A stretch of 64,000 nt of DNA from Oikopleura dioica (Eukaryota; Animalia; Chordata), in NCBI GenBank assembly GCA_907165135.1, contig OU015566.1, positions 8,618,001-8,682,000 on the forward strand. The letters are read 5' to 3'. Under the pieces are notes generated by a model. The model was not told the DNA's origin and ran no database searches. It saw only the letters and a program-made list of their open reading frames with translations. Positions within the stretch are counted from its first letter, which is position 1. Each line of letters begins with the position of its first letter. A program made the position numbers and the translations under genes. Below are positions 1 to 53,800 of the stretch, piece by piece.

Positions 1-1286
1 CGATTCGAGTACATGCAAGGAATCTTCCGTCGACTTGCCGGAGATCTCCATGTTGGCTTCAATAACTCAATCTACCTTTCAGAGCGATCCGTTGCTGATA
101 GGGAGGGATCTTTAAAGAACACGCCTATTTCGATGCAACCTATTTTTGATCAATTGAAGCTTTTAGGTCAAGCTCATAAACCTGATTACCCCGTCGATCA
201 CCCGTTTTTATGTCATTCTGAGCCACTTTTTGAGCTCGTAAACTAAATATCTAGCTAATTACTTATTGAAAAATTCATGATTAATATCCCGAACAAGAAA
301 CTTCGCTCTTGGTCACTACATGCACGAGCACGATTGTTTCCCAGCTGGAACCAACCTTGAAAAGGTCCTCGAATTCTACTTCCAGCTCTGCTCCATCGAA
401 GCCAAGTGCGATTCTCACTGTGTCATGGCTGCTACCCTCGCCAACGGAGGAATTTGTCCAATTACAAACGACAAAGTCTACGAGCCACGATCCGTCCAAC
501 AGACACTTTCTCTGATGCTTTCGTGCGGTATGTACGATTACTCTGGACAGTGGGCTTTCCAGGTTGGACTCCCCGCTAAATCTGGTGTTTCTGGTTCTAT
601 CATCGTTGTTGTTCCAAATGTCATGGCGATGTGCCTTTACTCTCCTCCACTCGACAAACTTGGAAACTCAGCCAAGGGTATTGAGTTCATGAACAGATTG
701 CTCCAACGATTCAACTTCCATCATTTCGACAGGTATAATAATTTTATTTGATAACTTGACATTCAACTTAAAATTTAAGTTTAAATCATGCTGTCCAGAA
801 AATCAACCCTCGAAATAACATGATGAAGATTGAGGACAGTAACCGCACCTCATTATTCTTTGCTGTTGGAGCAGGCGAACTTGGACTTGTCAAGAAGTTT
901 TTCGACAGCGAATACGACTTCAACGCCAAGGATTGCAACGGCCGAACAGTTCTTCACGTCGCCAGTGCAGTTGGCGCTGAATCAATTGTCCGATTCTTGC
1001 TTGAAAAGACTGAGGTTGTAATCGTCGTATTCTTACGAAATAAACCTTCATTTCTAGCTGAAAGCTGACGAGCCGGATCTATGGGGCGAAACTCCGATGG
1101 ACATCGCTACCAAATATGGCTTTAATTCTATTACAGATATCCTTCGTTGCCGAGTTATTGCACAAACCATGCCTACTGTGTAAGTAACAGTAATTTTTTC
1201 AAGTTGATTCAAGCTTTTCTAGTGACGATTCTCCAAAATCTCCTGCCATCTCTGAAGGAGATTCGGGCGTCGTTTCTTCTGCCTAG
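1..1286 (+). CDS. GLS: Glutaminase with C-terminal ankyrin repeats (KGA-type), 5' part outside window
   Basis: Spliced translation [34 protein letters not shown]|[15 protein letters not shown]...[25 protein letters not shown]...[13 protein letters not shown] matches the glutaminase catalytic domain. Ankyrin repeats follow ([23 protein letters not shown]). Introns at 102-297 (GG-AG), ~732-779, ~1015-1057 and ~1180-1222; stop TAG 1284-1286. Confidence 0.95.
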
Positions 1287-1458
1287 TGTCTGCGCCTTGA
1301 AATTAATAAATTTTTTGTGTAAATCACATTATTTGAATAATTTGTCTCCTCTACTTTATGTTCGATCTCCAGGGAATTCTAAGCACAAGTGAGCATCAAT
1401 TAAAAATAATTACTTTTTTCCTGCGGTAAGGCGAAAATTCTGCCAAGCAGTTGAACGA

Positions 1459-2287
1459 ATGAAGACAGTAAGAATGATAACAAAGAGAATATCAACCCCA
1501 AAAAGGTCACTTGTACTGGTTTTGCTACAATTTCCTTTATGTCTTCAACTGGTCGGAGTTTGTACAGATCACTGGATCGAGGGCAGAGAAAATTGGTTCG
1601 TGAAAGATGAACATAACCACATTCAAGTGACTTGGATGGTTATTGATAGTACTCAGGTTGGCAAATATTGTATGCTTTTTATCAGTCTGATAGGGGCTCA
1701 AACGATTATGTTGCCGAAGTGAAGAGTGTTATGGGCAATGCCGGCCAATAAACTTCACCGATTTGAGCAACGGAGAGACGAAAGAAATGATGAGCACTTG
1801 GGAACGCTATTTGTTCTCCGCCCGCGAAAGTTCAGTTTTTCTCAAATTTGCAGTCGTTTGTACCACCTTAACGACTGTCATAAAGATTCTCTACCCTCGA
1901 AAGTATATTCTTCACTCACTCATTCTAACAATATCCGCGATGTTTGGTTTCTTCGGTCTTACCGCATTCCTAGCAGTCACAGAAAAGTACCGAGCCGCGG
2001 AATACGAGTTTGGGGTTTCTTTTTACGCTGTTATGCTTGGAGTTTTGCTTGAAGGACTTCTCGCACTAGTGCTACTAGAAGACCGCGAATCAGTGGAACC
2101 TTATGCGCTCTCAGAATACTCAGTGATCACATCGCGTCTCACGACAATCCCTAATAGCTCCTTGGAATCACAGTCTTCTTCTGATTCAACTGCCAGCAAG
2201 GAAGAACTGCACTTATCATCGACAGAATGCTTGCTTTACGACGCAGAGCCGCGCATTTTCGGGAAGAAAAGATCTATCAAAAGGTAA
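1459..2287 (+). CDS. Claudin/PMP22/EMP-family tetraspan membrane protein
   Basis: N-terminal TM, then TDHW, and after a short intron GLKRLCCRSEECYGQC (claudin W-GLW-C-C-like signature). Three further hydrophobic segments, a FGVSFY motif and a Ser-rich tail follow. Confidence 0.7.
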
Positions 2288-2499
2288 GAGCCTAGCAAAT
2301 GGTCCCATAGGAGCTCGTAATCATTATCAGAGTCTAAATCTGCTTTTAAGAATGACACCTATTCCCGAGTTGCCAAGCCCGACCAGCCAGGGAGAATCTT
2401 TAATAAGTTTATAAAACTGCTCAAATCACTGATTGCAAATAAAACAAAAGCGTTAATGGAGGGGTAAGAAATATTTATTCAAATTCAAAAAGCAAAATT

Positions 2500-5400
2500 T
2501 CACGTCCCAACAGTCACTCCAACATTATTTTGAGTAAAGTGATCAAAAAGTGTTTCCTTCTTCTTAACTTTTTCTTTATCCAACTTCGTTTCTTGATACA
2601 GCTTGAAAAGACCAGTTCCGAGTTCGATTGGGACCCCAAGAATCAAAGCAGCACTAGGTCCAGCGAGGGAGTCCCTCTGTCCGTAGTAGGCCGCGTTGTA
2701 AAGAATGTCCGATGTTTTTTCGAAAGAGGACAAGTGAAGCGGCGAGTTCGAAACGTTCGCCAATCCAATTCTTGTACAACCAAATACTGAAAAAGAAAAA
2801 TAGTAGAAAAGGCGATCAGTTCAATTGACAAACCTGGACCAGTGTAAGTCATGTAATCAGCCAACATCATCAAGTGACGCCTATCAACGTGGATTCCGTG
2901 GTGCCCCATCGTATTTTCCATCTCGTTTATAATCGTGCTTCGCGCCGCTTCAATTCCAAGAATCTCAAACACCTTCGGAATGTGATTCGAAGACGTTCTT
3001 TCCAGTCGATTCCTATCACAATTCGTAAGCAATAATGAAAATAAATTCAAATACCTCTTGTGGCCAAAACGCCTCCCAAATCGTTTCCATCAATAATCAT
3101 TTCGAAAAATCCTTCTTTTTTGTCTTGATGACTGATAACAGCACGGTTGATTTCTTTCAGTCCTTGAACAAGAACTGCACAAATTGAGTCCTTCAGATTC
3201 GGCAGGCTCATTTGCCATTCTTATACGAGTTTTTCAACATGTTACATTCGAATAGTCTCAGTGAATATAGAATAAACTTTCCTGCGTCATCGTTAAAAGA
3301 AGAATGAATTGTCAAAATCGACTCTCCGTGAGCAATAATCTGCCCGAGTTTCAGCTTCAAGGATGAAATAGCGATCGAATGCTTGATAGATTCGACGGTC
3401 ACGCGCATTTTCAGCAATCTAACTCGCTTCGTGTCCAATTTGAGGAGCAAAAATGACTCGTCCGCGTTGTGCACTTCTTGAATGTACTCACAAATTTCTC
3501 CTAATGTTGTCTAAATAACGGATTTTTATTAACATATAATAGTTTAAGCAGACCTTTTCAATCTTTGAAGCTACTTCTTGTGCGAATTCTTTCGAGTCTT
3601 CAGTTGTTAATTTAGCCATAATGATGGGTGTCTTGATCTTTTGCGTATTGTTGATAATCTGCTCAATTCGCGGAACACCTTGCGTGATATTCATAGAAGC
3701 AACACCGGCGAAATGGAAAGTCTTCAGCGTCATTTGAGTAGCTGGTTCACCGATGGAAGTGGCACAAATTGCACCAACACAAGTTCCTGGCTCCATTCGG
3801 GCTTTGAAATACTTCAGCGCGCATCGCTCGACGAAGAGTTCGACTAGAAAAAGTTTTTAGATTCTCGCTCCTCTTTTGAGTCGGCGTCCGGTATATATAT
3901 CCTAGCGGTGAGAAATTTAGTTCAGTTTATAACGAGAGATATGAATGGTTTTACTTCCCGGTGATTTTTACGCATTCTGTATTATTGTTATCAAAATAAG
4001 AGATAATTTTATCTTGCTCTTCTGCCAAACTGATTCCGATCTGATAACTAAAGAACGTGGGACCCACTCTTGGCGGGTGATTTCTTGAGTGGCGCCCTCT
4101 TTCGGCAGCTGCATCCCATAAAGATGAATAGTTTTTGAAAGTTTTATTGAAAATATTGAAAGAAAAAGCCTTATTCAGAATAAGTTATTCTAGATTTAAA
4201 AAACACGAGATGGGCTGCTGGCTATTCGACACCGATTCAGAGGAAGAATACGATGATAACAACTGGGAGTATCACTTCAAAGTAATGAAGAATAGAAATG
4301 AGCGAAAGGAATTGAAGCTCATCAAATGGATGGGGGTAAAACTAGTGCTGGAATCCTAAAAAATACGTAAATTACTCTAGGAATTGGCAGAGGAGATCGA
4401 GGAACGAGAGGAACGGGTGAAGAAATTGCAAGATGCTCTGGATCAAACTCTCAAGTCGGTACCAAATTCTGATGTGGATGATGAAATCTTCAAAAAGCGA
4501 ACTCGAAGAGGGGCGTATGCCAATCAAATTGACACGAAAGAACTCGAGAATGCGAAGGCTTTCCTGAATGCTGCAAAAGGGGACTACGAATATATGGAGG
4601 AAAAATTAGGCTCGTTTCATATAAGTTTTTTGATATAAGTGTTACTTGAAGAGTAGGAACAAATATAGTGAAACGAATAAAAAGAAGAAATCAGAAAGGA
4701 TAACGAGTTGTACGATCTGGAAGATAAGCCCGGAAATGAAGAAGAAGAGTGAAGGAGATAAAAAAGAAGAAGAGTGACGAAAGTTATTTTGAATGTTTGG
4801 TTAGAACGAATAAAGATTGTTGAAAAAAACTACCTTGTTTAGCTGTTGTTCGCATGGCCTGATAGTTCGCTCTTTCATCATCAGATTTCGCATAAACTCC
4901 GTAGCTCTCCCAATGGCGCTTGACAATGTCAGCTTGTTTATCAGCAAATTCGATAGTTGTTTTGTCCAAAAAGTTTCTAAAGCCGACTCCAAATCCTTCG
5001 TCATTATATTTGAATCGTTTATCTTGCTTGACTTTCTCGACAGCTTCTCTCACCACATCTCTAATTTCATCGCTACAGATAGTTCGGTCATGCTTCCGAC
5101 CGAATCGGCAGATCGAATCTGTCCAAACTCGATCAAAATCGACCGGACGAGAGTCTCCCTCCATCTCTTGAGGGTCGAGCTGATCTTCTCCGTAGGTAAA
5201 CTGGATCACTCGATCGTCAGTGTTTCTTACTGTTCCGTCATACTGGACACACAAACCTTCCAAAGCCTGATTTGAGGATGAAAATACGTTCTTATTAGAA
5301 GTAAAATTGGGTAAAGAGAAATATAGATCCGTTCCTTGACTAATCGACGCTGCATATAACCCGTTGAAGCAGTTTTAACAGCCGTATCGACGAGACCTTC

Positions 5401-8226
5401 TCTTCCACCCATTGTATGGAAGAAAAACTCAGTCGGAGTCAGTCCAGAAAAGAAAGAGTTCTGGACGAAGCCACGTGATTTCGGATTCTTCGAGTCTCTT
5501 TCAAAATGAGGCAAGGAACGCGCTTCAAAACCGTTTGGAATTCGACTACCAGACAGGACCTGCTGACCGACGCAGGCAACCATTTGGGCAATATTAATGT
5601 TTGAACCTTTGGAACCACAGAGTGCCATGTTGAGAGGCGTATTGAACTTTGACAGCTCGGCAAAACATGCTTTAGCTGCGTCGTCTCGAATTTTCGAGAG
5701 CTCTTTTTGGACCACGTTTTCTAGTGTTTCATCTGCTGTACACCCAGGCTAAACACAGTTAATATTTGAATACAAAGAAGGCCTACTTGTAGTTTCAATT
5801 TATTATGTTTCTTGGCAAGAATATGCTCGTCAACTTTTCTATATTGCTCGTCAATGACCCTCATTTTCTTCTTCAACAAATTCTCCGACGCCCAGACATC
5901 ACCAATACCAATAGAAAAGCCTCTGTTACTCAAGTATCTAGGGCCGATTCTGCACATGCGCCACATTGCCTGTGCAGCTGCTTCTTCTCCGTAATCTCGT
6001 GTCAACATGTAAAAGACCTGTTTCTTCGAGCCCGAGCCAAGCGAGTTTTTGTCCATCGTACCAGCCACGAGCTCAGAATTACGGATCAACACCCACGAAT
6101 CATTGCAAATCATCTCAGGCGAGCCTTTTGAATAACCAACACACTCTCGTCCTCGCCACTCCCATTTTCCAGAAGCGTTCTTCGCTGGAGCTTCAAATCT
6201 TTTTGCCTTCGAGCTCAGGTTGATCAACTCATTCGAGTTGCGATTTGGACGAAGAAGACAGGAAAACACTTGCTTTCCGGACCAAAGAGGGGTCGGCTTC
6301 AAAATGCAGGGCTGTGGGATGCGAAGTCGACCCTTGTTTCTCGCGGTGACTGTTGTGATGAGCCGTAAAAACTCTTAAAATTATGTTTTACTTATTGAAC
6401 TCATAGAGATAAAGCTCACCTGAGTGGGTGAAAAAGACATCTTTCTGAGTTAGCAAGTACATCGAAGTGATGAAATCCTGAATAGAAGCGACGAGGGGCT
6501 CTCCAGACCTACAAGTCAGCGTATTAGACTTTACGCCCATAAGAACCATCGCCTCCGATCGAGCTTCGTTCGTTTGAGGGAGATGGACGTTCATTTCATC
6601 GCCATCGAAATCAGCATTGTAAGGAGCACAGACACATTCGTTGAATCGAAAGGTCTTCCAAGGCATAACTTTGACTTGGTGACTCATCATCGACTGGCGA
6701 TGAAGGGAAGGTTGACGGTTGAAGAGAACAATATCCCCATCATGCAAATGTCTGTGGACGGTATCACCGATTCGGAGCTCTTTAGATTTTTCATCCCTTC
6801 TTCTTTTTTCGCGTAAGAACGTAAGATTACATTTTTCTCCATTTTTATACAGGATTTCATTCGCACCAGGATATTCACCGCCATTTTTGACAAGATTTTT
6901 CATCTGCGCAATATTGTACCGTGTAACTTGCTCTGCAAAGGTCAGCTTTTTTGCGACATCGATAGGAATGCCGACTTGGTCGATGCGCAAGTTTGGATCT
7001 GGCGAAATGACGGATCGAGCGGTAAAGTTCACTCGTTTGCCTTGAAGGTTTTGGCGGAATCGTCCTTGTTTTCCCTTGAGTCGCTGGACAAGAGACTGGC
7101 GCGGCGTATCCTTGATCCGGAATTGCGACGGAAACGCGTTCAAGTTGACGCCAGAATTGATCATCAAGGCATGTAGAGACTGAAGTACGTCCCAGGATGG
7201 GCCTACATGACTCGTTCTTCCTGCAATATCCTTTCCATCAAGAATTGCTCGTTCAAGACCAGAGTTAATCTTGAGAATATGCATCAGACTCGCTGTCAGA
7301 TCATCCTCGTTCGTTCCTTGTCGGATATCAGACGTTACCGAAGGCCTGATAACTGATGGAGATACTGGAATCTGCGTCAGTATCAAATCTGATGGGTGAA
7401 CTGAGTCGACAGCCATACACAACAGCGGGTAATCTTCTTTTGGGATGTTTTCGAAGAGCTCTTGTGCTCTGCAAGCATCGATCGTGTGGCCAACAACTTT
7501 CTTCATGCTTTCCTTTAGGTCCTTTGATGCTGCCGGGTCGGTTAGTGCAAGTTGCATGTCTTTTTTGAACTCGGTTTGGCTCGGGTGATCTTGGATCCGG
7601 CTAGTTTTTGCGCCAGTGTTTTTGAACTTGTATCGCTCGTGGAGAAACTTGTGAAAGCCGACCTTTTTCACTGGTCCGTTGTACTCGGAGCAATGGAAGC
7701 AGGCCTTTGGTACTTTTTTCACCAAAGCCATGATGACTTTTTTCAAGGATGTTTTCTGGTCGTAGGTCATCTTTGCATTGTCCAGCTTTTTGCGAAAATA
7801 TTCACGGGTGTTGATCTTATTCGCGTTCTTGACGACATTTCCTTTCTCGTCGACGTCGTCATCGAGCAACACTCTCGAACAACCCTTGCAGATCATTTGC
7901 AGGAGATTATAAGTATGAGGTAGATAGCCAGTGTGGAAGATAGGCAAGGCGAGTTTGATGTGTCCAAAGTGACCCGGACAAGCTATCCGGTCATTTCCAC
8001 AAGTGGGACACATCGCACCTTTTTCAAATGGACCTAGTTTTGGATCAAACACGCCGTGCTGCGTTGGCTCCTTCTTGTCAGGCTTTTCGGGGTTGTAAGC
8101 GTGGTAGTTGTTGACTTCAACGACCGAGTAGTCCGAAATGATCTGCGGCGGGGGGACGCCGAAGATCATACTCGCGGGGGTGAAGATTTCCCCCGTTTCG
8201 CGGAACTGTTCTTTTTGGGAGGCCAT
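2500..8226 (-). CDS. POLR3A: RNA polymerase III largest subunit RPC1
   Basis: Starts [10 protein letters not shown]. Contains Zn motifs (CPTC..CPGHFGH), [20 protein letters not shown], catalytic [11 protein letters not shown], bridge helix [25 protein letters not shown], trigger loop [20 protein letters not shown], and C-terminal [13 protein letters not shown]. About 9 exons, including a ~1.8 kb first exon and a 990-nt intron (3844-4833). Confidence 0.97.
4210..4780 (+). CDS. Orphan acidic/coiled-coil protein nested antisense in a POLR3A intron
   Basis: ATG 4210 ([16 protein letters not shown]...), in-frame 45-nt GT-AG intron 4336-4380, then exon [20 protein letters not shown]... A probable GC-AG intron follows at ~4610; the 3' end is uncertain. 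Confidence 0.6.
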
Positions 8227-8391
8227 TTCGACTGTCAATCTACATCAGGAAATAAATAAGTAAACGTAAAAACTATTTTTGGATTGATTGATTGGTGTAC
8301 TAGTAGAATTGGGATAGAGTATTCAGTCATGTATTGTATGAATTAATTGTGATGAAAAATTGCAGGGGATTTTTGATAGGAACAACTGTAT

Positions 8392-9564: not shown

Positions 9565-10311
9565 AAAAATGGAACCGCGCGTCACGCGACCTTTTCTTTG
9601 CTCCAGCTCAAAGCTGCGAGCATCTTCTCAAGTCAATTGAGAAACTTACAGTAAGTAGTTTTTGAAGAGCTTCAATGTTCCAAGAGTAAGCGGCATTTCT
9701 GATATTTGTCGTTCTCTGCAAAAAGGATGAAAATGAGATTCGTTGAGATTTCATAGAAGTGTGAGTTTTCAACCCTTTTTCCTTTCAAGAGCCGCGTTGA
9801 AATCCATTTGGAACTGTTTGTGCTTGTGTTGTTCCATCGCCTCTCTTTGAAGCCTTCGAATTTCGTGGCTTTCCAGATCTTCGTCAAAAAGCATGTTGTA
9901 AATTCTTTCAAGTGCTGTTCCGGGTCCTCCGTGTTTTCTGTAGAACTCCTTGTTGAGGCACTCGCTGGGAATGTACTCCAAATCCGACGATTCGGAATCA
10001 TCTTTCAATCTGGTTAAATTTTGCTCGTGTTTCTGACATTCGAGACAGTAGCAATTTAGAATTTTCCGGGGCAAAGTGTACGGGTAGACGTTCCAGTAAT
10101 ACTTGGCCAAAATAATGGAGAATTTTACGATTAATTGGCCAATGGCGTAGAGAAACGCTGGAATTGCTGTAAAATCGAATTCGTATTCTATCTCTTTTTC
10201 TTTCTTTTTGACGTCTTTCGCTTTATTTATGGGCATTTTTTTCTTTGGCCAAAGTCGCATTACAATTGGAAATCCGCGGGCTCTTGTTTGCTCGAATAAA
10301 ATTTGACCCAA
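9565..10311 (-). CDS. Orphan protein with one predicted TM segment
   Basis: 180-aa ORF with hydrophobic IPAFLYAIGQLIVKFSIILA. It is extendable through a putative GA-AG intron (9716-9781) to ERERQISEMPLTLG. No recognised family. Confidence 0.5.
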
Positions 10312-13508: not shown

Positions 13509-15085
13509 ATGCCAAAGTTTAAATCTCGTGAAATCCTTTCGAGCGATTCTGACTCATCAGACGATGATGTTCCATCGGAAAAACCAAAGGTCGTCGCCAA
13601 GCCTCCCAAAGCGGAAAAGCTTAAAAAGGAAAAGAAGAAGGAGAGAGGGCGAGGTGTGTGTGGAAATTCCTAATTGACAGTCTTTAATTCAGGGCTGGAT
13701 AATTTGAAATCAACTCAAATCTCAACACCCCAAAACGGCCCAATTGACCAATCAGGATGGCCAAATTCCCGAAATATGGGTGTTGAGATTTGAGTTGATT
13801 TCAAATTATCCAGCCCCTGGGCTCGGCAACCTGAGTACAGGGTCAGGCTCAGGGTCAGGGTTCGAAAATTTTTTCTCGAAATTTACTCAGGAACTCAGGT
13901 CAGGGTTTTTCACTCAGTCAGGTTCTCAGGCAAACAGGTCAGGCCTGTTCAGACTCAGGTACTCAGGTCAGACTCAGGGGCCTGACTCAGGGTAAAACAC
14001 AGGGTTTTTTCGACCAAGTTCACACTTAAAAATTTCATTTTGCCCAGATAACTTTCAACCTGACAGTCCTGCAATCAGAAAATCGCCCTAATGATTGAAA
14101 ATCAGTGTAATTGGACCCCCTGACGTTGCAAATTGAGCCTTTTTAGTACTTTTTTACAGTAACTCAGGCCCTGTGTAAGCAACTCAGGCCTGTCTTTTAA
14201 CTCAGGTCAGGGTCAGGCTCAGGGTTTTTTTTCTCGAGTCTCGATTTTACTCAGGCACACTGTACTGTACTCAGTACTCAGGGGCCTGACTCAGGGCTTT
14301 TCTCAGGTCAGGTTGCCGAGCCCAGTCCAGCCCTGCTTTAATTCCAGTGAAGACATTTGACCAGATGCTAACTAAATTCTTCAGAAGCTGAAAGACCAAA
14401 GAAGGAAAAGCGGAAGATCGAGAAACGTCCGATCTCCCCATGTCTGAACCGGACTCTCCTCCGAGGAAGAAAGAAAAAGCTAGACCGGAAAAGAAGAAAC
14501 CCACGGCGAAGGGTGGCGACGAACCCGATGGAGGAGGCGTTGACTTGTCGCACATGACTCTCATTGGCCCGAAACGATACATAGGCCCGATGGAATTCAA
14601 GGTAAACGATGAAGGTTTTGGCGAAAACTGAACATTGTTTATTAAAAGGGCAAGCACTACTTGAACATCAGGGAGTACTACGAAGACTCGACGGGAATGA
14701 AGCCAACAAAGAAAGGCGTCGCTTTGAATCAAGGCGAGTGGCGAAAACTGAAAGAGTCATTCTACGACGTCGATGAAAAAATCCTCATCGCCGAGGCGGA
14801 AGACTACAATCCACTCGAGATAAGCGACAAGAAACAAATCCGTGTTACCAAATTCAAGGTTCGTTTATTATATTAAACGTTCAGAAGGAGTAAAATTTAT
14901 AGGGAAAATTCCTTCTCATTGACATCCGGGAGTTCTACAATAAAGATGGCGAGAAGAAGCCCGGAAAGAAGGGAATCGCTCTGAAACCTGACCAGTACAA
15001 CAAGATCAAGGTGGAATATCGCCATCAACATTGATTACTTATTATTTTTCAGGACATGCAAGAAGAAATTGACGGCTGGTTCTGA
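13509..15085 (+). CDS. SUB1: PC4/SUB1 transcriptional coactivator with two tandem PC4 ssDNA-binding domains
   Basis: N-terminus MPKFKSREILSSDSDSSDDD. Repeat 1: KRYIGPMEFK|GKHYLNIREYY...MKPTKKGVALNQGEW. Repeat 2: KQIRVTKFK|GKFLLIDIREFY...KKPGKKGIALKPDQY. An apparent 1-nt frameshift in the C-run at ~14436-14439 is likely an assembly error. Confidence 0.88.
13690..14335. mobile_element. hAT-like foldback MITE (~130 bp core) in SUB1 intron 1
   Basis: Inverted repeat of ~41 bp, CAGGGCTGGATAATTTGAAATCAACTCAAATCTCAACACCC. Flanked by an 8-bp direct repeat CTTTAATT at 13682-13689 and 14336-14343. Confidence 0.9.
13817..14325. mobile_element. Second MITE (509 bp) nested in the right TIR of the first
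   Basis: 18-bp TIR CTGGGCTCGGCAACCTGA / TCAGGTTGCCGAGCCCAG. 8-bp TSD TCCAGCCC at 13809-13816 and 14326-14333. Subterminal arrays of CTCAGG/TCAGGG motifs. Confidence 0.9.
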
Positions 15086-42797: not shown

Positions 42798-45486
42798 CTA
42801 GAAAATGAATGGAACAAGAGCTTTTCGACCGGCGACTTGAGACGTTCCAAATTTTGAATTGTAAAAGTCTAGGGTCATTCTGGCAGAGATTGATTGATTG
42901 ATTAAAGTGAAGAAGAACGGAAAGAACATGTGAAAGCCACCGATAGGCAGGAGAGCGAGGTAGAAGAGAATTTCAGAAGCAATCGTTGGGGACATAATGT
43001 ACTAAAATAGAATCGAATTAGGGCAGGGGCACCGATTTCTTACTGTAAATAGACCACTTCGCGGAGGACAAGAGTTTTTTTGCGCATTTGGGTCAGATCG
43101 AAGATTTGCCATTGCTCGTATGCTAAATTGATAGAACTTGAAATAAGAAATCAATTTAAATAGACAAATGATGAATTACCATAAAAATTTTTCGGGCAAA
43201 AAAATTTTTTTTGAGATATTGGTATATTCTGAAAGTCCAAGTCAAAATTAGTCGATTCCCAAATTTCTAGGGCTCAATGACGTCATGATGACGTCATTTA
43301 TGATGAATAAATGTCCGAAAAGGCTCCAAATTCATGAAACTTTGGAACGCTTTTTGAGGCTGTTTTTGCTGGAAATAGATTTTTCGATTTCAAAAATTGG
43401 ACCGGTCGGTAATGGTTGATATTCAATGGTTTGATCCCGGGTCCCTACGTAGTTTTTCATGGAAAATCCGAATCCGTCGAGAAAAATAAAATTAAAAAAC
43501 GTTTTCGGCTCGAAAAAGCGTTCCAAAGACAAAATTTTCAAATCAGCCCGATGACGTCATAATGACGTCATCTGACCCTAGAATTTGGTGATTCTGTATA
43601 ACTTTTTACGGGCTTTCAGAATATACCAATATCTCAAAAAAAATTTTTTTGCCCGAAAAATTCTTATGGTAATTCATCAAATAGACATTGATAAATTCCT
43701 GATGATTTGAAATTTATTGGGATGCGTGTTCGGATTAATTCATTTTCAGATTTATTCAAAGGGATTTATTTCGAATACAAACTTGATAGCAGCATCAAAA
43801 ACGCATTTTATAGCATAAACATAAGATGAGAATCATTTTAATGGTTTGTTCTATAGGTCGAATCCTATTATTATATCAATATTATTAAATGCTTCATTTA
43901 ATAATATTTTTCAACTAAAAATAAATCTTCATTTCTGCGAGGAGCTTCTTTCTCATTTTCTTCACTTCATCATCCTTCAAGTTGCTGTTTTTGATCAGAG
44001 CCAGTAGCTCCAACTTCTCTCGTTTGATTCGAGCAGCGAGCTTTGCTTCGGTTTCTGTAACTTCGTTAATGCCTTCGTTGATGGAGAGTTTTCGAACGAT
44101 AAGCTTGAATTCTTCTTTTTCGAGCATTTTGATGAAAACTCTTTTGCTTTGGATAAGTCTTTCATGGTTATCGGCTGTACACAAGAGATGAGATGCGTTC
44201 TTCATTTTGTAAAAATTTAAATAGGATTAAAATTAAAGCTGTGTTTCTGAATTGCCTGAAATCAAATGGTTTTATACAGTAACTCTTTGGAAGATGGCGC
44301 TGCGGGGCTACCAGCTGTTTCCAAGCGGGGAGTCAAGATGGGTTAGGTCTCCCGCGTGAGAGAATAGGTTTAGATCGAGATCTTTCAGAAGATTTCTTGA
44401 TACGGAAATCGATCTTGAATCTTCATCTCTATCGTTTTTCACCTCGGCGGCGAATTAATGCACATAAAAGCAGAAGATTTCACAAATATCCTTACCTCAA
44501 GTGTTGATAGAAGATCGCGGAAAAGACTGCTGTTATCTTGAAAATTGAGCCAGGAGATAGCTCCTTGTCAAAGTCAAGAGCATCGGGCAAAGAAGCCAGC
44601 GTACTTAATGGAACCAGAACGTAAAAAACATGACCAAGCGCATAGTGAGCGATCGACATGACATTTTTAGACTTCGCTATAAATATAGACTCTCAAAATA
44701 GGGCTCGAGTTAACGGAGTTATGCAATGCAATAATATGGGCCAAAATAGCTTTAGCGATTTTCAAAGAAGCTTTCTGGGGCAATTGATATGAGCAAATTG
44801 CAATATTTTGTTACTTAAGATTGCTTTAGCAGATGTTAATTAGTAAATAAGTTGATATGAGCGTCTAATTTTGGTGACAAATAATTCACTGTTTTCTCCA
44901 AAATTGTAATTATATCGAACCCGTTCCTAACAACCGCTGCAGAAGATGAACAAGAACGAGCCATCCAAGTAAGGGAACACGATCTAATGACACCCTTTGA
45001 AAGTCGAAAATGAACGCGCCTTACCATCAAAGTCGTGTATCAAGAGTCGCATTACGCCTTTACGTAATTTTGGGTTGCTTTCGCCAACTGTAAATAGACT
45101 CAGATCCAAAATCGGATGCATCGCAATCGACATGAGTCCTATTTCAGGCAAACTAGGTTGGCCGTCTTTTTTTTAGGTTGAGCAAATGAACCGCGAATAG
45201 ACTGATTTTGGTAGGAAATGAACCATTTTTGTTTGTTTATCCGGATTTCTTCAACCGTTCCCAAGCACCAGCGATAGAGCAGAAGAAGAAAGAACAAACT
45301 TCCTAATAGATAAAAGTGGGTAAACCAGGCTTTCGGAACGTCAAAAGGGTATGTTTTGACTCTTGTCTTCCCGAATGTTGTGAGTTGTTGGAATAACCCG
45401 TTATTGGTGATGATTTTTGGCGAGGTAACGGCGAGTCCGGCAACAGTTAGAACAATCCAAATACAGTCGATAAGGTAGAGTTCCAT
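42798..45486 (-). CDS. SRD5A3: Polyprenol/polyprenal reductase
   Basis: Exons FGKTRVKTYPFDVPKAWFTHFY, LVHLLQRLL|ESIF...HYALGHVFY, MANLRS...PRSGLFT|YIMSPTIASEILFY and NQSISA...FYNSKF...RKALVPFIF* are colinear with SRD5A3. Confidence 0.88.
43170..43678. mobile_element. Palindromic MITE (~510 bp), same family as 38938-39531, in an SRD5A3 intron
   Basis: Ends GATGAATTACCATAAAAATTTTTCGGGCAAAA and its near-reverse complement. Shares AGTCGA, TTTTACGGGCTTTC and paired TGACGTCA with the other copy. AAATAGACA is repeated at 43158-43166 and 43679-43687. Confidence 0.88.
43915..44205 (-). CDS. Possible orphan ORF inside an SRD5A3 intron (same strand)
   Basis: 96-aa K/E/L-rich helical ORF with ATG and stop; no recognised family. 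Confidence 0.35.
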   Translation of the reverse strand: MKNASHLLCTADNHERLIQSKRVFIKMLEKEEFKLIVRKLSINEGINEVTETEAKLAARIKREKLELLALIKNSNLKDDEVKKMRKKLLAEMKIYF

Positions 45487-45576: not shown

Positions 45577-46455
45577 TCATAGGAACGAAATTGCCTTGTC
45601 GTTGCGATCGAGCAACTTTTGTGAATCTTTGATAATCTTCTTTCTATCCGCGCGATTTTGAATGTCTTTGGGGTCAAGTTCCACAGCATCGCAAGCTTCC
45701 AGCAATTTCATCAATGCTTCATTTATTCCCCTGAAAAAATTGATTAAAATATCAGCAGAAAATATATTCATACTTGTATGATTTGCAAAGTTTCTTCGAG
45801 TTCTTGTCCTCGCGTTTGGTGAATTCTTTGTTGAGTCGGCGACTTTTTTGTTTAAGATCCTGGAATCGCTCTTGAAGATCGTGGATTTGTCGAGAATCCT
45901 CGAGGAAAATGTTGACGCGATTCTTCGGCGGAGATCTTGAAATGTTATCAAACCTTATACTTATCTCCAATGATAAGTACCTTGACCGAGATCTACTTCT
46001 CGAGCGATCTCTGGAGTAATCTCTTTCGCCATCTGAATCTGAGCTCTGAGACGAATCGCTTCCGGAATTTGCCGCGGCCGCTTCTCGAGCCTCTTGTTCA
46101 GCTTCAAGTCGCTCCTCGAGCTTTTCTTGCTCTTTGCGCTTTCTGGCTTCATACATTTCTCTGCTCGGATCTTCAGGCAGCCCATTGACTAAAGAAATCC
46201 CCATGTAAAACAATTCTAGCATGAAACTACAAAATTACCTTTTTGAATCAAAAGATCAAGCCAAACTGCGAAATCCGCAGCTTTTTCTTCTAACAATTCT
46301 TCTAAGTCCTCCCTAATAGCATCAAATCGCTTCTTTCTCGCGAAGATGATCATCACAAAGTCGATCAAGTCATCATCCTCCTCGATCTTCATGGCGGCGA
46401 GTTTCTTTTTGATCGCCAATCGGAATTTCACTGTTATTTCTGCTGTTATGTCCAT
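45577..46455 (-). CDS. PWI-like domain + RS linker + BAG domain protein
   Basis: Four exons joined in frame by three GT-AG introns. N-terminal PWI-like AIKKKLAAMKIEEDDDLIDFVMIIF...LEELLEEKAADFAVWL. C-terminal BAG-like KKLCKSYKGINEALMKLLEACDAVEL...RADRKKIIKDSQKLLD. Confidence 0.75.
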
Positions 46456-46651
46456 TCTGAATTGCATTATTGAGGAGAAAATCTGAACTTTTGAATGTTT
46501 AATATTCAGTTGTTGAACGAAGAATGGGGGTACAGATGCTTTTTTTTTGTGTGTGCCAGTAGTGGTGCTTTTTCTTATTTGATTATGATATGCGATTGTT
46601 GAACTGTGCGAAAACATAAAATGGTTGACAAAAGAAAAAGGGATTTGAATA

Positions 46652-49600
46652 TCAGCCTCTGGAAGCGATGAGAACGGATCGAATGATGCTCAGAAACGTT
46701 GGAAAGTCGGTGTTGAGTGATGGAACTGTGTAACTCTAGGAGAAAAAAATGAGAAATGAATTTCAAGTGCAAGATAATCAGGGCGATAAGGGCCTCCGTT
46801 CATGTAATATCCTAGTCGTGGAAGTAGAGACATCCGTTGGTCTGGGGATTTACTTACGGAGAGATGCTTAGGTAAAGTGTTTGTGAATATGGATTGAAGG
46901 TCGCATATTTTGTTCTCGTAGAACGTGTGGTGAAGCAAAGTTATCAGCTCATCCTCGATAATAAGGTGTTGGCCAGCGAGTAGGGTGCTGGAGACGGCCC
47001 CGACAATTAACGGGTTGATATTTACTCTAAAACAGAAATCGAGTTAGCTGCTCAGGGAACTGAGATTTGATAATTACCGAACAGCATCGTTAGAAAAGAA
47101 TTTACGCTCTTTTTGAAGCTCGAGAAGGAGATTTAGTGCATTTCTGGACAGTGTTAGATCAGTAGAAGTGATAGCTACAGAAAGTTAATTAATGTTTATT
47201 AGAGAAACGTTACCAGTGATAAAGTAACGAATAATTTGCATAAGAGTCTGTTCATTTTGGATTTTTGGATAACTCGAGCCGGGAGAGTTGGATTTGAAGT
47301 GCGAAGAAAGAACGTTGCCCGGGAAAAAGAATCGATATTTGACGGAAATGATCCTCTTCAAAAGCGTCAATCCAGCTGAATAAATTTAAATTCCAGCGAA
47401 AACTCATTTATTGAACCGCCTACCAGCATGGACAGGAGGCGACATTTCAGAAGCAGGAAGAATTATATTCATCGTGAGATTAAGAACGACGGGTAGTATT
47501 TCCGCATCCTTGCAGTACTCGACTACCGCGGAAATGATCTTTGTCATGTTCTCCAGGAATTGAACCCCTTCTTCTTTCAGCAAAAGCTCATTTGCTTTCT
47601 CAACAGAGAATCCCTTCAAATTCACGATAACTTCAAAGAATTTTTCAAAAACAAACCTCATAGCAAGCCTGAACAGTTCTTCTCGTCAGTTCCATATCTT
47701 TCGTCGCTTCTTGCTTCATGCAATTAAAGTAGTCAGTCGTTAGATTCATCGCTGCCTTCGTCTCCTTTATATCCACATTGAAAGTGTTTATATGTGGCAC
47801 GCAGTCGAAGACGATATTTCTTATTCCCGCAGAGCACGATTTCCTGCAGGCGACGGATTCCGAATAAACCAAGAAGCAACAAGAACTGATGAAATCGAAC
47901 CTGGCCGACTGTGATTTTACAAGACTCGTGAAAAGCTCCGTCCTCTCCGGCCATTTTTGATCTGCTTGAGTTGTATTTGGATAAGGGAGCAAGAAAAGAC
48001 TCGCCAGCGCTTTCAGAACAATCGTTTTCGTTTCCTCGGTCAGGGGAATGTTCTTTGGACTGGGGCCAATACCACCAATTGAATAAAGTTCACCTAGCTC
48101 GCTCGCTGAATAATTTTTATAACATAGAGTGGATATGCATTTTAGATCGCGTTTTAGAGGTTTTCAAAGTCAAGCCCTGTTCAACTAAATGCACATAAAC
48201 GCGACTTTTTATCTCCGATGGCCTGAAATTTGAAAATTAAGTCTTCAAAATAAACGCACCTAGGATATCAGCGAAATGGGGCCGCACAATACTCGCCCAA
48301 CACTGTAGCAACTGAGCAGCCACTTTTTGAATCTTTTGCGTTTCTTTGCTCGGCTCTAGAAGTAAAACTGGGATGGAAATGTGCAGAACTTTTCGCGAGA
48401 GATGAACGACCGGTGCTGACTCGAGTTTTTCTTTCGTGTCTATTGAAAGAGTATTTTGGGCTTTTGCGTAAAACTGCGAAAGCCAGTGCTGGTATGGGCG
48501 GAGTGCTGAGAGGACTTGGCAGTGTAGTTCGATTATGGATGCGCTGTGCGATTTGGAATGGACGACCTTTTAGATGATAACAAAGTTGGACTCTTAGAGA
48601 CTCGCAAATCAAATTTATTAACCTCGATTTAGAGAGACTCGCAAATCAAATTTATTAACCTCGATTTAGATTATTCAATTTTATATCATTCCTGGTAAAG
48701 TTTTTCCGCTAGCTCAAGAATCAACTCAAGTATCAATTTCACATCTTCCTCGAATTTTTGAAATTCTTCCCCGAGAAAATGTTCCGTTAATCTTCCAGCG
48801 ACCTGCAAAAGAGTCCCAAGATCGAGAATTTTCGCATCAGTGAAGCTTTGCGGCTCGCTGAGAAATTGAGAAACTGTAGATTTGAGATTTGGAATGAGCG
48901 CGGTGAGAATATCCATCGGCTTGAGGCAGCAAATCCTAGCGATTATTTCGATATTCGCTGTGATGAAACTGCTCCTTTCTGTCTCGCCGGATTCATCCGT
49001 TTCTTCGTTGTCGAGAGTCATCAACAAATCCGCGGAGAATTGAACCTGTGCCTTGTTCAATGACTCGTTGAACAATGAAACAAGAAGCTCTTGATAAGTC
49101 ACCGAGGGTCGCTCGCCAAGGAACTTTGACCATTCAAGAACCATCAGCTGATCCAGGAATTCATCCCAAATTTCCAGACATGCGAGAAAAGCTTCCGTGT
49201 TTTTCTGCGAAAAAGTAAACTTGAATAGAATCGATAGCAAGTCCATAATCGGAAATTCTTTCTGACTCTCAAAGAAAGTGAAATGAGAAGACATGAATAC
49301 GCGGCAAATATGGACTAGACGAGGGACGTAATTGTTTCCAGAGTTCCAGTGAAGAAATGAGCTTTCTACGCAATGCTTCATTTGTGTGAATAAAAGTTAT
49401 TAAAGGACATCAATTGTTTCATAATAAGAATGAACGTCATTTTAAGAAATTACGTCAGAACGAAAAGCGTCAATTCAATTATCAAAAGTGTTATTTACCA
49501 ACTAAATATGATGAAGTCTCTTTATAAGGCGACACTTATGTTTTCTATCTATTATTATTAAACATAGAATTATGAGAAATAAACGAAGCCCCTCTATTGA

Positions 49601-50610
49601 GAAAATTAACTACATTATCAGCCGTTACGAAGATGTTCACAAAGAGGTTTCATCTGTAGAAAAAGCGAAGAAGAAATCGTCAACTTTACAGCAAGAAAAA
49701 CTTCGATTGAGAATTTCAAAACTTATTTCAAAATAAAATTTTCACACAATGCCTCGTTTTCAGTAAGCGTCGCAATGACTTGAAAAATTGACTCCAAAAT
49801 CGAGCTGAAAACAGCCAAACTCGTTGGGTTTGTTCTGTAATCGGCCATCACTGTTGAACATGATTTATTCTTGCCAGAAACAAAGTCAATAATGGTTTCG
49901 AGAATCTGGGCGGAAATTTCGACGTTTTCTTCAGTTGGTTTCACGGCGAAAGAAACCACGTGTTTAAAGCAGTCGCCGAGATTGTCGGTAGAAAGAGAGT
50001 AAATGCTCCCTAGTGAGCCAAGGAGCTTTATAGCCATCATAACTTCGGCTTTATTTTGCTGAAAATCGGAAAGTTTCTGCAGGCTGTCAGTGACAACAGG
50101 AATTATCAACTCTGGCTGGGAAAGGATAACGTCGTGCACTTTCGGTCTCAAGCGTGTCATGTGATCGTTGTTGTCGATTTCTTCAAAGAGTATTTGAAGA
50201 ATCTCCAGATGAATAGGCCTCGGAAAATTGGAACAGACCTGAATCGCATTTCGGCTTTCTTGCATTGAAATAACGACCATCAGAGCGATGCATTTGCAGA
50301 CTTTTGTCTTTATAAATCCTCTCTGTCCAGTGTACTTCGCTAGCGCTTCGAATATTTCTGTTTGTTTTTGGCCGTTTTTAATGAGCGCCATTTGGTTTCT
50401 GGCGATAAACTGCTCCAGAGTGGATAAAACGTAGGTAAATGTGGTTGATTCTGTCTGATTTCGATGGTCATTAACGAGAAGGAGGAGATTGTCGAGGCTT
50501 GTTTGGGTGGTCCACTGATTTAAAATTTGACTTATTTCGCGCAGGCGAAGTACAGGAACGCCTGCAGTATGCAACTCAGCGGTAATTCGATGGAGACTAT
50601 CATAATCCAT
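46652..50610 (-). CDS. XPO6: Exportin-6
   Basis: FESQKEFPIMDLLSILFKFTFSQKNTEAFLACLEIWDEFLD and QVLSALRPYQHWLSQFY match XPO6. About 8 exons, ending TDFPTFLSIIRSVLIASRG*. Confidence 0.85.
48596..48669. repeat. Perfect 37-bp tandem duplication in an XPO6 intron
   Basis: AGAGACTCGCAAATCAAATTTATTAACCTCGATTTAG occurs twice, at 48596-48632 and 48633-48669. Confidence 0.95.
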
Positions 50611-51150
50611 CTTAATTGTTATTCATTTTGCTTTCTGGTGAATTTAATTATCATTTATTAAATATTAAATAAGCGGTGTCAAAAACGGTGTGAAGCGATA
50701 AGGCAGAATTTGGTGGTCATGAATTGTTAGAAAGATTCGGAACGGATTAGCGGAAAGTTCACAATAATAGATAGGTCATGTGGGAGTTGTTAAAGTTGAA
50801 GGAGCGAAGTTGATATTTTTTGAAAAGATGTTTAATTTTTGATTTTCTTTCTCAATTATATTCAATATTCAGAGGCATGCAGTCAAAATTAATTGAACAA
50901 GAACACAGTGCAATACTTGCAAAATAAGAAATTTTAAATAATCACATTTTAAGGTTTATTATATACAGAAGAACGCATTTTATTATATTTTCGGAATCTT
51001 AAAAAGCTGTAGGTTTTTTTTAACAATGGTAACAAATTTGCATATTTCATTCCTTTGCATAGACAGTCTTGCATCAAAAAATATTAAATGAAACATCAGA
51101 TAAAAGTTTTTCGAACAGGGTTATTCGTGATCGAACAGTAAATTGGTTGT

Positions 51151-52094
51151 TTAAATATGCTTTTTGATAACTTCGAGGGATGGGCGATTTGATAGGAAGT
51201 TTCGTTTTGGTGTCGAAGTTGAAGCTGCTGGGAAAGTCTCGTTAGAGGTCGGTTTCTTTTGCACGCGTCGTGCGAGTGCGTGTACCAGTCGCTCGTGCAC
51301 GTTGACGCTCCGCTTTGCGCGCTTCTTTTTGGAGTCTTTCGATTTCCTGAGAAGATTTGTATTTAATTACAAAATTGGAAAGGTAGCTGACTTACCAAAT
51401 CCTTGAGCTCAATCTGCGCTCTTAATTTTTTGTTCTCCATTTCTAAATCGTCGATTCTATCTTCAAGGTCGTAGACTTGTTGTTGAAGGTCTCCCTCGTT
51501 CATATCGTGTAGTGGCAAATCGTCTTCCTCTGAGTCTGAGGAGGGGACAATGCGCGCTGGTGGCTTGGGCTCGGGTTGTTCTGGCGCGCGAGAGATACTC
51601 CTCTTTGGGACGTTCCGCGGGGGCTTCGCGACATGATTACTAAAGAAAGACAACTGTAATTGATGTGTTGGCAAGAGAAGCATTTACTGCGCGAGTACTC
51701 TTTAACTCTAAATTATTCAAAAGGGGCAAGTAGACTTACGTTGTGACTGAAGAAACTGGGTCATTATCGTCAGTGTCATTTGAAGATGGAATCCTGGAGA
51801 GACAATTCATAGTTCATCGAGGTTCGAAGAATGGTATTTACCTTTCATGAAGTCCAGCGGCGGCTTGGTTGTATTCCTCGTTCAAATCTTTATTCGTTAT
51901 CGACTTGTTGATGTTCTCATCCAGTTTGAGATCCCCGTCTGTTTTTATTTTTTCTATCTCCGCCTCGGCCTTGGAAAATAAATAATGCTCTGATGAGAAT
52001 TTCAATAAATTACCTCTCGAAGTTGTTCGAGATTAATTCCCGTCGGATTTCTGGTCTTCGCATCTCTACCTCTGAATTTTCGCGCTTTTGACAT
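51151..52094 (-). CDS. Uncharacterised multi-exon coiled-coil protein
   Basis: ag|aATG start (MSKARKFRGRDAKTRNP) and several short GT-AG introns. Acidic and coiled-coil segment DLQQQVYDLEDRIDDLEMENKKLRAQIELK. Confidence 0.55.
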
Positions 52095-52178
52095 TCTAAA
52101 AAATAGAATTCACTCTATTTCAATCAAGGAGAGTGGCGCGTGCCACGGGCAGTTGCATTTTCAGATACAATGTTTGAG

Positions 52179-53800
52179 CTATTGTTGAACGAGCTCTTGA
52201 AGTTTATCCACGTTCTCTTCACTGATTCTTCCCTCTATGTCTTCAATCAGCAAATACAGCTCTACCGGCTAAAAAATTTTTAAGAAAAAAAAATAAATCT
52301 TCCTTGATTTCCACGAGGAAATGAGCGTAAAGAAAAAAGTTGGAAGAGGTTTTATGGAAATATTCCTCCTTGATTTCAAGGAGAAATCCCATGAGTTAGC
52401 CGAAATTTGCGTCACTTTAAATGCAAGTCATTTTTCTATTTATTCAAAAAGAGGCTTCATCACACGTCACTCGCTGGAATTTGTTCTCGTGATCGATAAG
52501 CTACGATGAAGCTGCGATTATCAATAAGCGTGAGAACTTGCTTCCAAGGAATGCAAATAGAAGGAATGCAAGGATATAAAGAAAATACCGTAGCTTCTTC
52601 CCAAGGAATCAATCAAAATAAGCAACAATCGAGGCCGAAGAAAAATTACCTGTTGAGGGCGTAAATTAACAATTTGCATGAGCTCATTTGGGAGCAATTT
52701 AGCACCATCATCATCTGCCTTAAGCTTCTGGACAAATTCGACTATTCCTTCTTTGGTTTGCTGCGCTGCCGGCAGTTTTGACAAATAATTTGCCGTCTCT
52801 AGCGTTACTGTATTCAATGCCTCATCTGAAAAAAAAACGCATTTACAAATGTGTTCTTCAGAAAATAATCAAAAATCGATGCTGAGATGATTTCTTTTAG
52901 TTTTGTTTAGTTTGGTTAGACATTGTTCCTGATTGTCTGATCGTCAGCACAATCTGTAGAGGACATGGAACATATTTTATTTTTAGTCATAAAAAATTCG
53001 TATTCATAAGGCAAGGAGGAACGGCATGATTATTGAAATGTGAGGTGTCATAAATTTCTCAAAGAAATGTCAAGGTTGTGGTCACTAGCATTTTATATGT
53101 GCGAAAGCGTTACGGTAGCTCAGCTGCGCATACATCATCTATTTAGGAGAATATTACGTTGAATCTTATAAGATCATATGATTTTCGCTAAGTTAAAGAT
53201 GTGGCTAACCATGATTCATGAATCCTCAATTTAAATTATCAATAAGGGCTCTTTAACAGTAGTAAATTAAACTGAAAGTAGTGCAAGTCTTGACATTGAA
53301 CGATGCGAAAAGTCAGACAGACATCCTCTATCCCGACAGAAAACGATGAAAGTAGAGGAGACTAGCGGCCAATTTGGCCCGTCTAAATATGCAAAGGAGG
53401 ACCTTGCAAATTAGTAAATTTGCCAAGTTGTCAATTATCTGAGTCTTGATAGACAACGCCCATAAATTTCATTCATGAATGATTCAGAATCATAAACAAC
53501 AACATAAATGAAAACCGTTGATTTTCTCTTACCTGCCTTGACGGAATGCTTTCTCTTCTTTGCCTTTTCTTTCTGCTCATTCTGATATCTGTTTGTACGA
53601 GTTGACCAGTGGTCTGTTCAGTCTCCATCTCTCAAATATTTGGCTAATTAAAAATTTCTGGAATGTGACTTTTTCGCTAAACCGCTGCTTTTTCGGCCGC
53701 AATCGAAGTGTGGCCAACTCGTTGCCTGTTCACTGCTTCAAGTACTTCGAAATTGGTGAGTAGCTCTTTTCAGAGGACTCCGAATAAGTCCCTCTTTTCC
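52179..53800 (-). CDS. CRCP: RNA polymerase III subunit RPC9 / CGRP-RCP
   Basis: Spliced ELLTNFEVLEAVNR|YQNEQKEKAKKRKHSVKA|DEALNTVTLETANYLSKLP...LMQIVNLRPQQ|PVELYLLIEDIEGRISEENVDKL. The start codon is not resolved. Confidence 0.85.

Follow-up and report, generated by a model that had tools for sequence, protein, structure and literature searches.

Complementary arms at the ends of GA-AG, GC-AG and GG-AG introns in a 64-kb region of the Oikopleura dioica genome, a possible splice-site clamp

We have analyzed the introns in a stretch of 64,000 nucleotides from the larvacean Oikopleura dioica (assembly GCA_907165135.1, contig OU015566.1, positions 8,618,001 to 8,682,000; hereafter the window, in whose own coordinates features are given). 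Ten introns with non-GT donors, listed in a preliminary description of the same sequence, carry short complementary arms just inside their two ends, and this complementarity exceeds that of random segments, of mismatched ends and of GT-AG introns. The ten lie in GLS, POLR3A (POLR3A_1 and POLR3A_2), an unnamed gene, a gene provisionally called TOR1AIP, TMEM41B, an SRD5A3-like gene, XPO6 (XPO6_1 and XPO6_2) and CRCP/RPC9; nine are on the minus strand and the GLS intron is on the plus strand. All of them begin with G[ACG]A and end with AG (six GA, three GC and one GG), and their excision joins open frames and recovers recognizable protein sequence. G at +1 and, as had been claimed, A at +3 are found in 10/10 introns, and G at +5 in 6/10. 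We consider it somewhat more probable than its negation (roughly 0.55) that the end helix is a selected clamp that pairs a weak donor with a weak acceptor on young introns, perhaps derived from hairpin-ended inserts.

The stem of each intron was scored as an ungapped Watson-Crick helix with a 5′ arm starting at +2 to +6 and a 3′ arm ending 4-10 nt before the intron end, the register in which the preliminary description had reported complementary arms. In coordinate order from GLS to CRCP, the ten stems measure 5, 5, 4, 7, 6, 6, 3, 6, 9 and 8 bp, with a mean of 5.9 bp. The mean is 2.42 bp among 3000 length-matched G[ACG]A..AG pseudo-introns drawn at random from the window, of which 3.7% have stems of at least 5 bp, compared with 8/10 introns. 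Combining the 5′ end of one intron with the 3′ end of another (90 combinations among the ten) gives a mean of 2.74 bp, and the 27 GT-AG introns of the window have a mean of 3.0 bp (P = 6×10−5 against the ten, Mann-Whitney test). The observed mean was reached by 0 of 5000 permutations and 0 of 20,000 bootstraps. The reported arms are thus borne out, and the suggested comparison of non-GT introns with GT introns and mismatched ends reveals an excess of end pairing among the window introns. The CRCP stem reaches 12 bp when G-U pairs are allowed, and the SRD5A3 stem, 3 bp by Watson-Crick pairing, reaches 8 bp with G-U.

Duplex energies calculated without regard to register lead to the same contrast (mean −10.1 versus −6.0 kcal/mol, P = 1.5×10−4). 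When entire introns are folded, the terminal stem is present in the minimum free energy (MFE) structure of 8/10, including all five introns of up to 150 nt, and in the unnamed gene (z = −2.4), CRCP (z = −2.3) and XPO6_1 it is found in both the MFE and the centroid structures. In the long non-GT introns the terminal stem carries high pair probability. In whole-intron ensembles, 1.1 to 11.8 end-to-end pairs are expected for non-GT introns and 0 to 2.6 for GT introns (P = 0.004); this test is limited to introns longer than 100 nt because the end windows span entire GT introns of 40-50 nt, which would make an unfair control. Among the stem-bearing introns, the unpaired 3′ tail is usually 2-4 nt longer than the unpaired 5′ tail.

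Orthologous loci were recovered through exon-sized protein searches and contig look-ups. L009 is a near-identical relative of the window, from the same lineage (97% identity), and lineage C (L002, L006 and L007) has exons with about 80% nucleotide identity to the window. The Bergen lineage is represented by L008 (scaffold FN654436.1), which was reached from a search with a 159-aa POLR3A exon via its cluster; GLS, POLR3A, the unnamed gene and a chromodomain gene are in the same order there. The window belongs to a lineage other than that of Bergen; its POLR3A exons share 78-98% protein identity with the Bergen model CBY33677.1 (P0151). Lineage D (L001 and L003-L005) is very distant, with about 59% protein identity in XPO6, and could represent a separate species instead of a cryptic lineage of O. 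dioica; it has the gene order CRCP, XPO6, SRD5A3, TMEM41B in common with the window. With these loci and with homologues, 9/10 of the junctions given in the preliminary description are independently confirmed. Six introns are missing to the base elsewhere (TMEM41B, CRCP, XPO6_2 and SRD5A3 in lineage D, XPO6_1 in lineages C and D, and the unnamed gene in Bergen), and the junctions of POLR3A_2, POLR3A_1 and GLS are backed by collinearity with homologues or the Bergen model.

The TMEM41B intron (33524-33700, GA-AG, 177 nt) has arms at 33691-33696 (GGGTTT) and 33534-33539 (AAACCC) and adjoins an exon that matches Pfam VTT_dom; it is exactly absent from lineage D, where L001 and L003 read ccaccttttg^ttctatttt. 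The CRCP intron (53589-53725, GC-AG, 137 nt; arms 53715-53722, ACGAGTTG, and 53597-53604, CAACTCGT) adjoins an exon that matches Pfam RNA_pol_Rpb4, and its flanks are adjacent in lineage D (L003 5149/5150). XPO6_2 (49376-49752, GC-AG, 377 nt) has arms at 49741-49749 (TTGTGTGAA) and 49382-49390 (TTCACACAA), which form 11 bp with one bulge. It is absent from lineage D (L003 9888/9889 are adjacent), and in lineage C it is 98-100 nt long, with an unalignable interior and a retained core TGTGTGA/TCACACA. The intron of the SRD5A3-like gene, which encodes a Steroid_dh domain, spans 44692-44926 (GA-AG, 235 nt; arms 44915-44922, GGGTTCGA, and 44701-44708, TCGAGCCC, one of the 8 bp being G-U). It is absent from lineage D, where the open reading frame (ORF) is collinear, and is a GC-AG intron of 172 nt in lineage C (L002), with the stem GGCTCA/TGAGCC. 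The intron of the unnamed gene (9716-9781, GA-AG, 66 nt) has arms at 9774-9780 (AAAAAGG) and 9720-9726 (CCTTTTT), extended to 9 bp with G-U; it is missing in Bergen, where the collinear read-through is FNACIA|REKMLSDMP, compared with FNAALE|RERQISEMP in the window. XPO6_1 (48567-48691, GA-AG, 125 nt; arms 48684-48689, ATGATA, and 48574-48579, TATCAT) is exactly absent from both lineage C (L002, L006 and L007; ORFs P0001 and P0016) and lineage D, and it is therefore probably a gain in the window lineage. Between the arms of this intron, which is private to the window lineage, there is a direct tandem duplication with a unit of about 41 nt.

Removal of the GLS intron (102-297, GG-AG, 196 nt; arms 105-109, GGGAT, and 286-290, ATCCC) restores ...SERSVAD|RNFALGHYM, and exon 2 matches Pfam Glutaminase starting at its first residue. 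Between conserved exon sequences, the orthologous Bergen intron is GA-AG, 175 nt long, with the stem GGGATT/AATCTC. At 152-226, in the interior of the GLS intron, the window and Bergen share about 93% identity, more than in the flanking exons, while the 3′ third is unalignable; this interior matches no Rfam family, and a search of the whole window against Rfam gave zero matches. The conserved stretch might represent a small RNA missing from the annotation, an element with a regulatory role or an exon used alternatively.

POLR3A_1 (3220-3281, GA-AG, 62 nt) has arms at 3274-3278 (AGTTT) and 3228-3232 (AAACT), and its junction coincides with an annotated junction of CBY33677.1. Its Bergen orthologue is a GA-AG intron of 1431 nt (L008 16432-17862) with the stem AGGTT/AACCT; this Bergen intron holds a nested element with inverted repeats of about 30 bp at its bounds (GGTCGAAAGCAGGGCCTCAAATTTTTGGTTC and its complement). 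For POLR3A_2 (5267-5334, GA-AG, 68 nt; arms 5327-5330, GGAT, and 5276-5279, ATCC), the junction is the sole length-consistent one when set against POLR3A homologues. The same site in Bergen holds a canonical GT-AG intron of 45 nt. In L009 (2976-3042) both arms of POLR3A_2 are kept and the flanking exons are identical, but the interior differs strongly, with changes at many positions between the conserved first 8 nt and the conserved last 20 nt.

The putative TOR1AIP intron (28876-29270, GC-AG, 395 nt; arms 29260-29265, GGGTTT, and 28883-28888, AAACCC) fits the reading frames, and an in-frame GG donor at 29264, 6 nt downstream, is equally possible; an in-frame GT-AG alternative was looked for and none exists. 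Its small exons have no Pfam match and there is no usable orthologous locus, as L022, found by a search with the N-terminal ORF, aligns over the first exon only. Both this junction and the gene name, which was taken from the preliminary description, should be regarded as unverified.

The list of non-GT introns is complete for POLR3A, which has eight introns in the window, six GT-AG and the two listed GA-AG. In XPO6, an eleventh non-GT intron had been overlooked at 46457-46656 (minus strand, GC-AG, 200 nt, without a terminal stem). At this same site the donor reads GCTGATATTC in the window, GTTGAAATTC (GT) in lineage C and GCTGACATAC (GC) in lineage D. A dynamic-programming gene finder run on the whole window was rejected as a source of gene models: it fused genes and forced wrong GT donors, e.g., 48567-48742 in place of 48567-48691, which is proven by the empty site. 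Its output was used solely as a source of short, consensus GT-AG control introns. We also noticed that the Bergen model CBY33677.1 removes two in-frame GA..AG stretches, L008 9397-9552 (156 nt) and 9674-9769 (96 nt). Both are alignable to a continuous ORF in the window (6391-8244) and neither has a stem, and these two “introns” are probably annotation artefacts.

Four of the window introns (GLS, POLR3A_1, SRD5A3 and XPO6_2) have orthologues in a sister lineage, and 4/4 keep the stem in register although their interiors are unalignable or differ in length by hundreds of bases (377 versus 98 nt in XPO6_2 and 62 versus 1431 nt in POLR3A_1). Changes within these stems tend to come in pairs or to leave a wobble, which is what the preliminary description had suggested looking for. 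The third pair of POLR3A_1 is T-A in the window and G-C in Bergen, with both arms changed. Between the window and lineage C, the SRD5A3 stem shows a U.G to C-G change and the addition or removal of one base pair on both arms. A single C-to-U change in the 3′ arm of GLS results in a G.U pair in Bergen. Pair 12 of XPO6_2 is A-U in the window and U.G in L006, and L002 and L007 have an A x G mismatch there. As a sign of selection, these pair-preserving changes are suggestive rather than conclusive, because the cases are few and the arms are short.

Of the nine stem-bearing introns that could be compared, six are missing from another lineage. As many members are limited to one lineage, the class appears to be evolutionarily young or subject to fast turnover. 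Three short GT-AG introns are likewise absent from lineage D, and they have no stems; the stem thus tracks donor type and not youth alone. The pattern recurs among introns outside the window. Within a region that is a single exon in the window, Bergen POLR3A has a private GA-AG intron of 2044 nt with a 5-bp stem. Lineage D XPO6 has a private GA-AG intron (L003 11211-11306) that begins GAACGGTTTAC and has a 10-bp stem, and a second private intron (L003 11697-11804, hereafter D-B) that is GT-AG; at both introns the D protein is exactly collinear with that of the window and of lineage C, which fixes the junctions. Among the introns of Bergen, C and D, seven non-GT introns have a mean stem of 5.9 bp and 13 valid GT introns a mean of 3.8 bp (P = 0.004); one row of this GT set, C (c), was left out for a wrong anchor, and the result is unchanged by its removal. 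When these introns are pooled with those of the window, stems of at least 5 bp are found in 13/18 non-GT and 6/40 GT introns (P = 4×10−5, Fisher’s exact test).

The stem-closed non-GT introns differ from GT introns in other respects. Their T fraction at −9 to −3 is 0.30, compared with 0.60 in GT introns (P = 0.0035), so that a non-GT donor is combined with a T-poor 3′ end and the signals at both ends are weak. Non-GT introns are also longer, with a median of 157 nt versus 47 nt (P = 4×10−4). We therefore describe a class of introns that start with G[ACG], have little or no pyrimidine tract, are longer than the modal intron of 40-50 nt and are closed by a helix of 4-12 bp. From the comparison of sequences we infer that the helix may form in vivo, take part in splice-site pairing and have an origin in insertions. 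It would bring the weak 5′ and the weak 3′ splice sites together, and a single permissive major spliceosome could then pair the two. The introns retain G at +1, A at +3, the frequent G at +5 and the terminal AG. Selection would retain the helix where it is needed. The arms possibly entered the genes as the ends of insertions bearing hairpins or inverted repeats.

We propose, more tentatively and at a little under even odds, a wider version of this reading: a helix in fixed register would replace the GT donor and the pyrimidine tract, would be kept by compensatory evolution and would define a large share of the roughly 11-12% of introns that are non-canonical in this species. RNA structure would then form part of the splicing code of a chordate, in a system run by the spliceosome and convergent with the nonconventional introns of euglenids.

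Several observations weigh against a selected clamp. The ends of the TMEM41B and TOR1AIP introns are not closed in the MFE structures, and the 4-5-bp stems of POLR3A_1 and POLR3A_2 (MFE −4.4 and −4.5 kcal/mol, z not significant) are no more stable than shuffles. The intron at 46457-46656 has an in-register stem of 2 bp and no end-to-end pairs in its MFE structure; the stem rule does not cover all non-GT introns, and a one-base GC variant of an old GT intron is exempt from it. Nor is the stem exclusive to non-GT introns, since D-B carries a perfect 16-bp stem that, as a GT-AG intron, it should not need. The 5′ arm overlaps +3 to +8, the region that pairs with U1 and U6, where a stable helix could hinder splicing. 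The compensatory cases come from 3-4 introns with 2-4 sequences each, and the arms concerned are short, AT-rich and affected by small indels. GAACGG(G)TT or GGGAT is common to several 5′ arms, and the G-rich strand lies on the 5′ side throughout; neither would be expected of a clamp that acts through structure alone. GAACGG(G)TT / AACC(C) is found in unrelated genes and in lineages as distant from each other as the window and D, either because these introns descend from a single element that propagated or because something reads the sequence itself. The clamp put forward in the preliminary description is partly supported: the stem goes with non-GT donors and T-poor 3′ ends and orthologues keep the pairing, it may compensate for weak donors, and it is neither general nor exclusive.

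The same preliminary description had offered a second reading, in which the arms are neutral fossils of the terminal inverted repeats of insertions resembling miniature inverted-repeat transposable elements (MITEs) or introners, and non-GT donors simply come from poor insert ends. Inverted repeats and empty sites are indeed found. The lineage-restricted positions of stem introns are expected under this reading, and so are the two private introns of lineage D, whose inverted repeats span 10 bp (GA-AG) and a perfect 16 bp (GT-AG), the private 2-kb GA-AG intron of Bergen, the lack of a stem in the old shared GC-AG intron and the terminal motif GAACGG(G)TT...AACC(C) that recurs across genes and lineages. 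The repeats measure 4-12 bp in the window introns and 10 or 16 bp in those of lineage D. They do not, however, occupy the very termini, being offset from the 5′ and 3′ ends by 1-5 nt and 4-10 nt, respectively. Comparison of filled with empty sites at five introns (CRCP, XPO6_2, TMEM41B, XPO6_1 and the unnamed gene) gives no more than 1-2 nt (AG or G) as possible target-site duplications, except for a 5-nt AACAG at CRCP. Blastn searches with the ten introns against the 64-kb window and about 76 kb of nine related loci detected no second copies. In JGI metagenomes, 11 matches to an 18-mer of the D-B arm were obtained, each of them single and unpaired, as chance could explain, and none forming a paired repeat. 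The positions themselves are equivocal, as three short GT-AG introns are also absent from lineage D and the position of POLR3A_2 is common to a normal GT-AG intron in Bergen. Furthermore, the arms persist with compensatory or wobble changes while the interiors are saturated, and XPO6_1, the one clear recent gain, has merely 6 bp. Purely neutral, fossil arms seem unlikely to us, although this is the leading alternative to the selected clamp; insertions could still have supplied arms that were later kept as a clamp.

Three other explanations bear on how the ends are read or on how they were chosen. If a G-rich 5′ signal (GAACGGGTT-like) and a C-rich 3′ signal (AACCC-like) were each read by a protein or small nuclear RNA (snRNA), the complementarity would be incidental; GG(G)[AT]T at +5 to +9 together with A[AT]CC(C) near −10 is found in 6/10 introns of the window, as well as in several from Bergen and lineage D, always with the G-rich strand 5′. 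We nevertheless regard separate signals as improbable, as the mismatched ends are hardly above random (2.74 versus 2.42 bp), the changes in POLR3A_1 and SRD5A3 hit both motifs together, and the arms of CRCP, XPO6_1, XPO6_2 and D-B are unrelated in sequence but have the same geometry, which favors pairing over two fixed protein-binding motifs. The near-euglenid geometry, the missing pyrimidine tract and the poor complementarity to U1 would also fit introns that are defined by the helix and removed without the spliceosome, as suspected for the nonconventional introns of euglenids. This is very improbable here: G at +1, A at +3 and the 3′ AG, all of them invariant, and G at +5 in 6/10 are spliceosomal hallmarks without euglenid counterpart, and published work treats the G[ACG]-AG introns of O. 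dioica as substrates of the U2-type spliceosome (PMC8008620, PMC13326754). Finally, the junctions might be misplaced, or stem-bearing introns might have been picked at first reading, as could be argued from the ambiguous TOR1AIP donor, the omission of the stemless GC-AG intron and the GT donors that a crude gene finder forced at several of these sites. With six junctions base-exact from empty sites and three from collinearity with homologues or an annotated model, POLR3A fully inventoried, and the pattern recurring among introns outside the original list, such an artefact is already largely refuted and hardly credible.

The ten introns are members of a class already known in O. dioica by its dinucleotides, with GA, GC and GG donors and AG acceptors. 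G[ACG]-AG (“GV/AG”) introns make up 11-12% of the introns of this species (Denoeud et al. 2010, as quoted in PMC8008620; also PMC13326754), which has the major spliceosome only (PMC8008620, PMC13326754). The searchable literature on these introns gives dinucleotides and frequency only and is silent on pairing of the ends, on the lack of a pyrimidine tract and on turnover specific to lineages, although an earlier description is possible. In the nonconventional introns of euglenids, a helix forms near the ends, typically between +4 to +6 and −8 to −6 (PMC11282704), and such a helix is also reported in PMC3935182, PMC4770533 and PMC6221363. The O. dioica introns resemble these and diplonemid nonconventional introns in the nearly identical register of the end helix, the lack of a pyrimidine tract and the poor complementarity to U1, and D-B resembles the euglenid “intermediate” type. 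Unlike the euglenid introns, whose borders vary at both ends and whose removal is possibly non-spliceosomal, they have an invariant G at +1 and 3′ AG, their host is an animal, and their arms are not fixed as CAG/CTG. As their borders stay G...AG, they are not members of the euglenid family but may work alike.

Within larvaceans, Fritillaria borealis has non-canonical introns derived from MITEs (Henriet et al. 2019, as cited in PMC11282704 and PMC13326754), and duplicated U2AF subunits were needed for them (PMC13326754). According to these secondary accounts, the Fritillaria introns share with ours a larvacean host, non-canonical borders, lineage-specific positions (its canonical introns being at conserved positions) and inverted-repeat ends. 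As portrayed there, they are mostly AG-AC or AG-AT, have target-site duplications and form repeated families, whereas the introns described here have G[ACG]-AG ends and no duplications or copies were found. We know of nothing in O. dioica like the duplicated U2AF subunits of Fritillaria. Introners, as found in Micromonas, Aureococcus, dinoflagellates and fungi, are defined by many near-identical copies and are mostly GT-AG. The introns of the window are similar to introners in their probable recent lineage-specific gain, with splice sites that insert ends would supply, and a secondary structure is described for fungal introner-like elements; unlike introners, they have no second copy in the window and the nine related loci. 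GC donors are normally compensated by an otherwise strong consensus. The stemless intron at 46457-46656, which differs by one base from a GT-AG intron (GT in lineage C), is like such an ordinary U2-type GC-AG intron, while XPO6_2, CRCP and TOR1AIP are without a strong consensus and carry a terminal helix instead.

How O. dioica, with the major spliceosome only and a conserved U1, recognizes many GA-AG, GC-AG and GG-AG introns has been a standing question since the genome paper. The most recent study from the main laboratory for larvacean splicing still seeks the answer in snRNA modification and in paralogues of U2AF (PMC13326754). A terminal helix would offer a concrete mechanism that is directly testable in a cultured, injectable animal. 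It would also link animal introns to the structure-defined introns of euglenids and suggest how inserted sequences whose splice signals are poor come to be accepted as introns. In addition, gene predictors biased to GT mis-annotate such genes, as seen with the gene finder used here and with the doubtful “introns” of Bergen POLR3A, and a stem term could improve annotation.

Beyond the non-GT introns of the window, end pairing can be seen in two short GT-AG introns, 14602-14648 on the plus strand (AAACGATG/CATTGTTT, with G-U) and 6374-6419 on the minus strand (TGAGC/GCTCA). Such pairing in a few short GT-AG introns may be due to chance or may be the GT-AG fringe of the same phenomenon. In a further lineage with 94% protein identity to the window in XPO6, L021 has an extra intron after ...SVTYQ that begins GACTGGCTTCGG (678-836, its 3′ end lying off the contig). 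The segment from CRCP through TMEM41B, with XPO6, SRD5A3 and others between, spans 15.6 kb in lineage D (L003 5100-20690) and 21.7 kb in the window (53700-32000), and at least seven window introns are absent from this part of L003. Conversely, lineage D has a 91-nt intron (L003 9491-9591) that is absent from the window; its best collinearity needs CA..TA ends, and the GA-AG alternative, L003 9491-9581, has a 5-bp stem in register.

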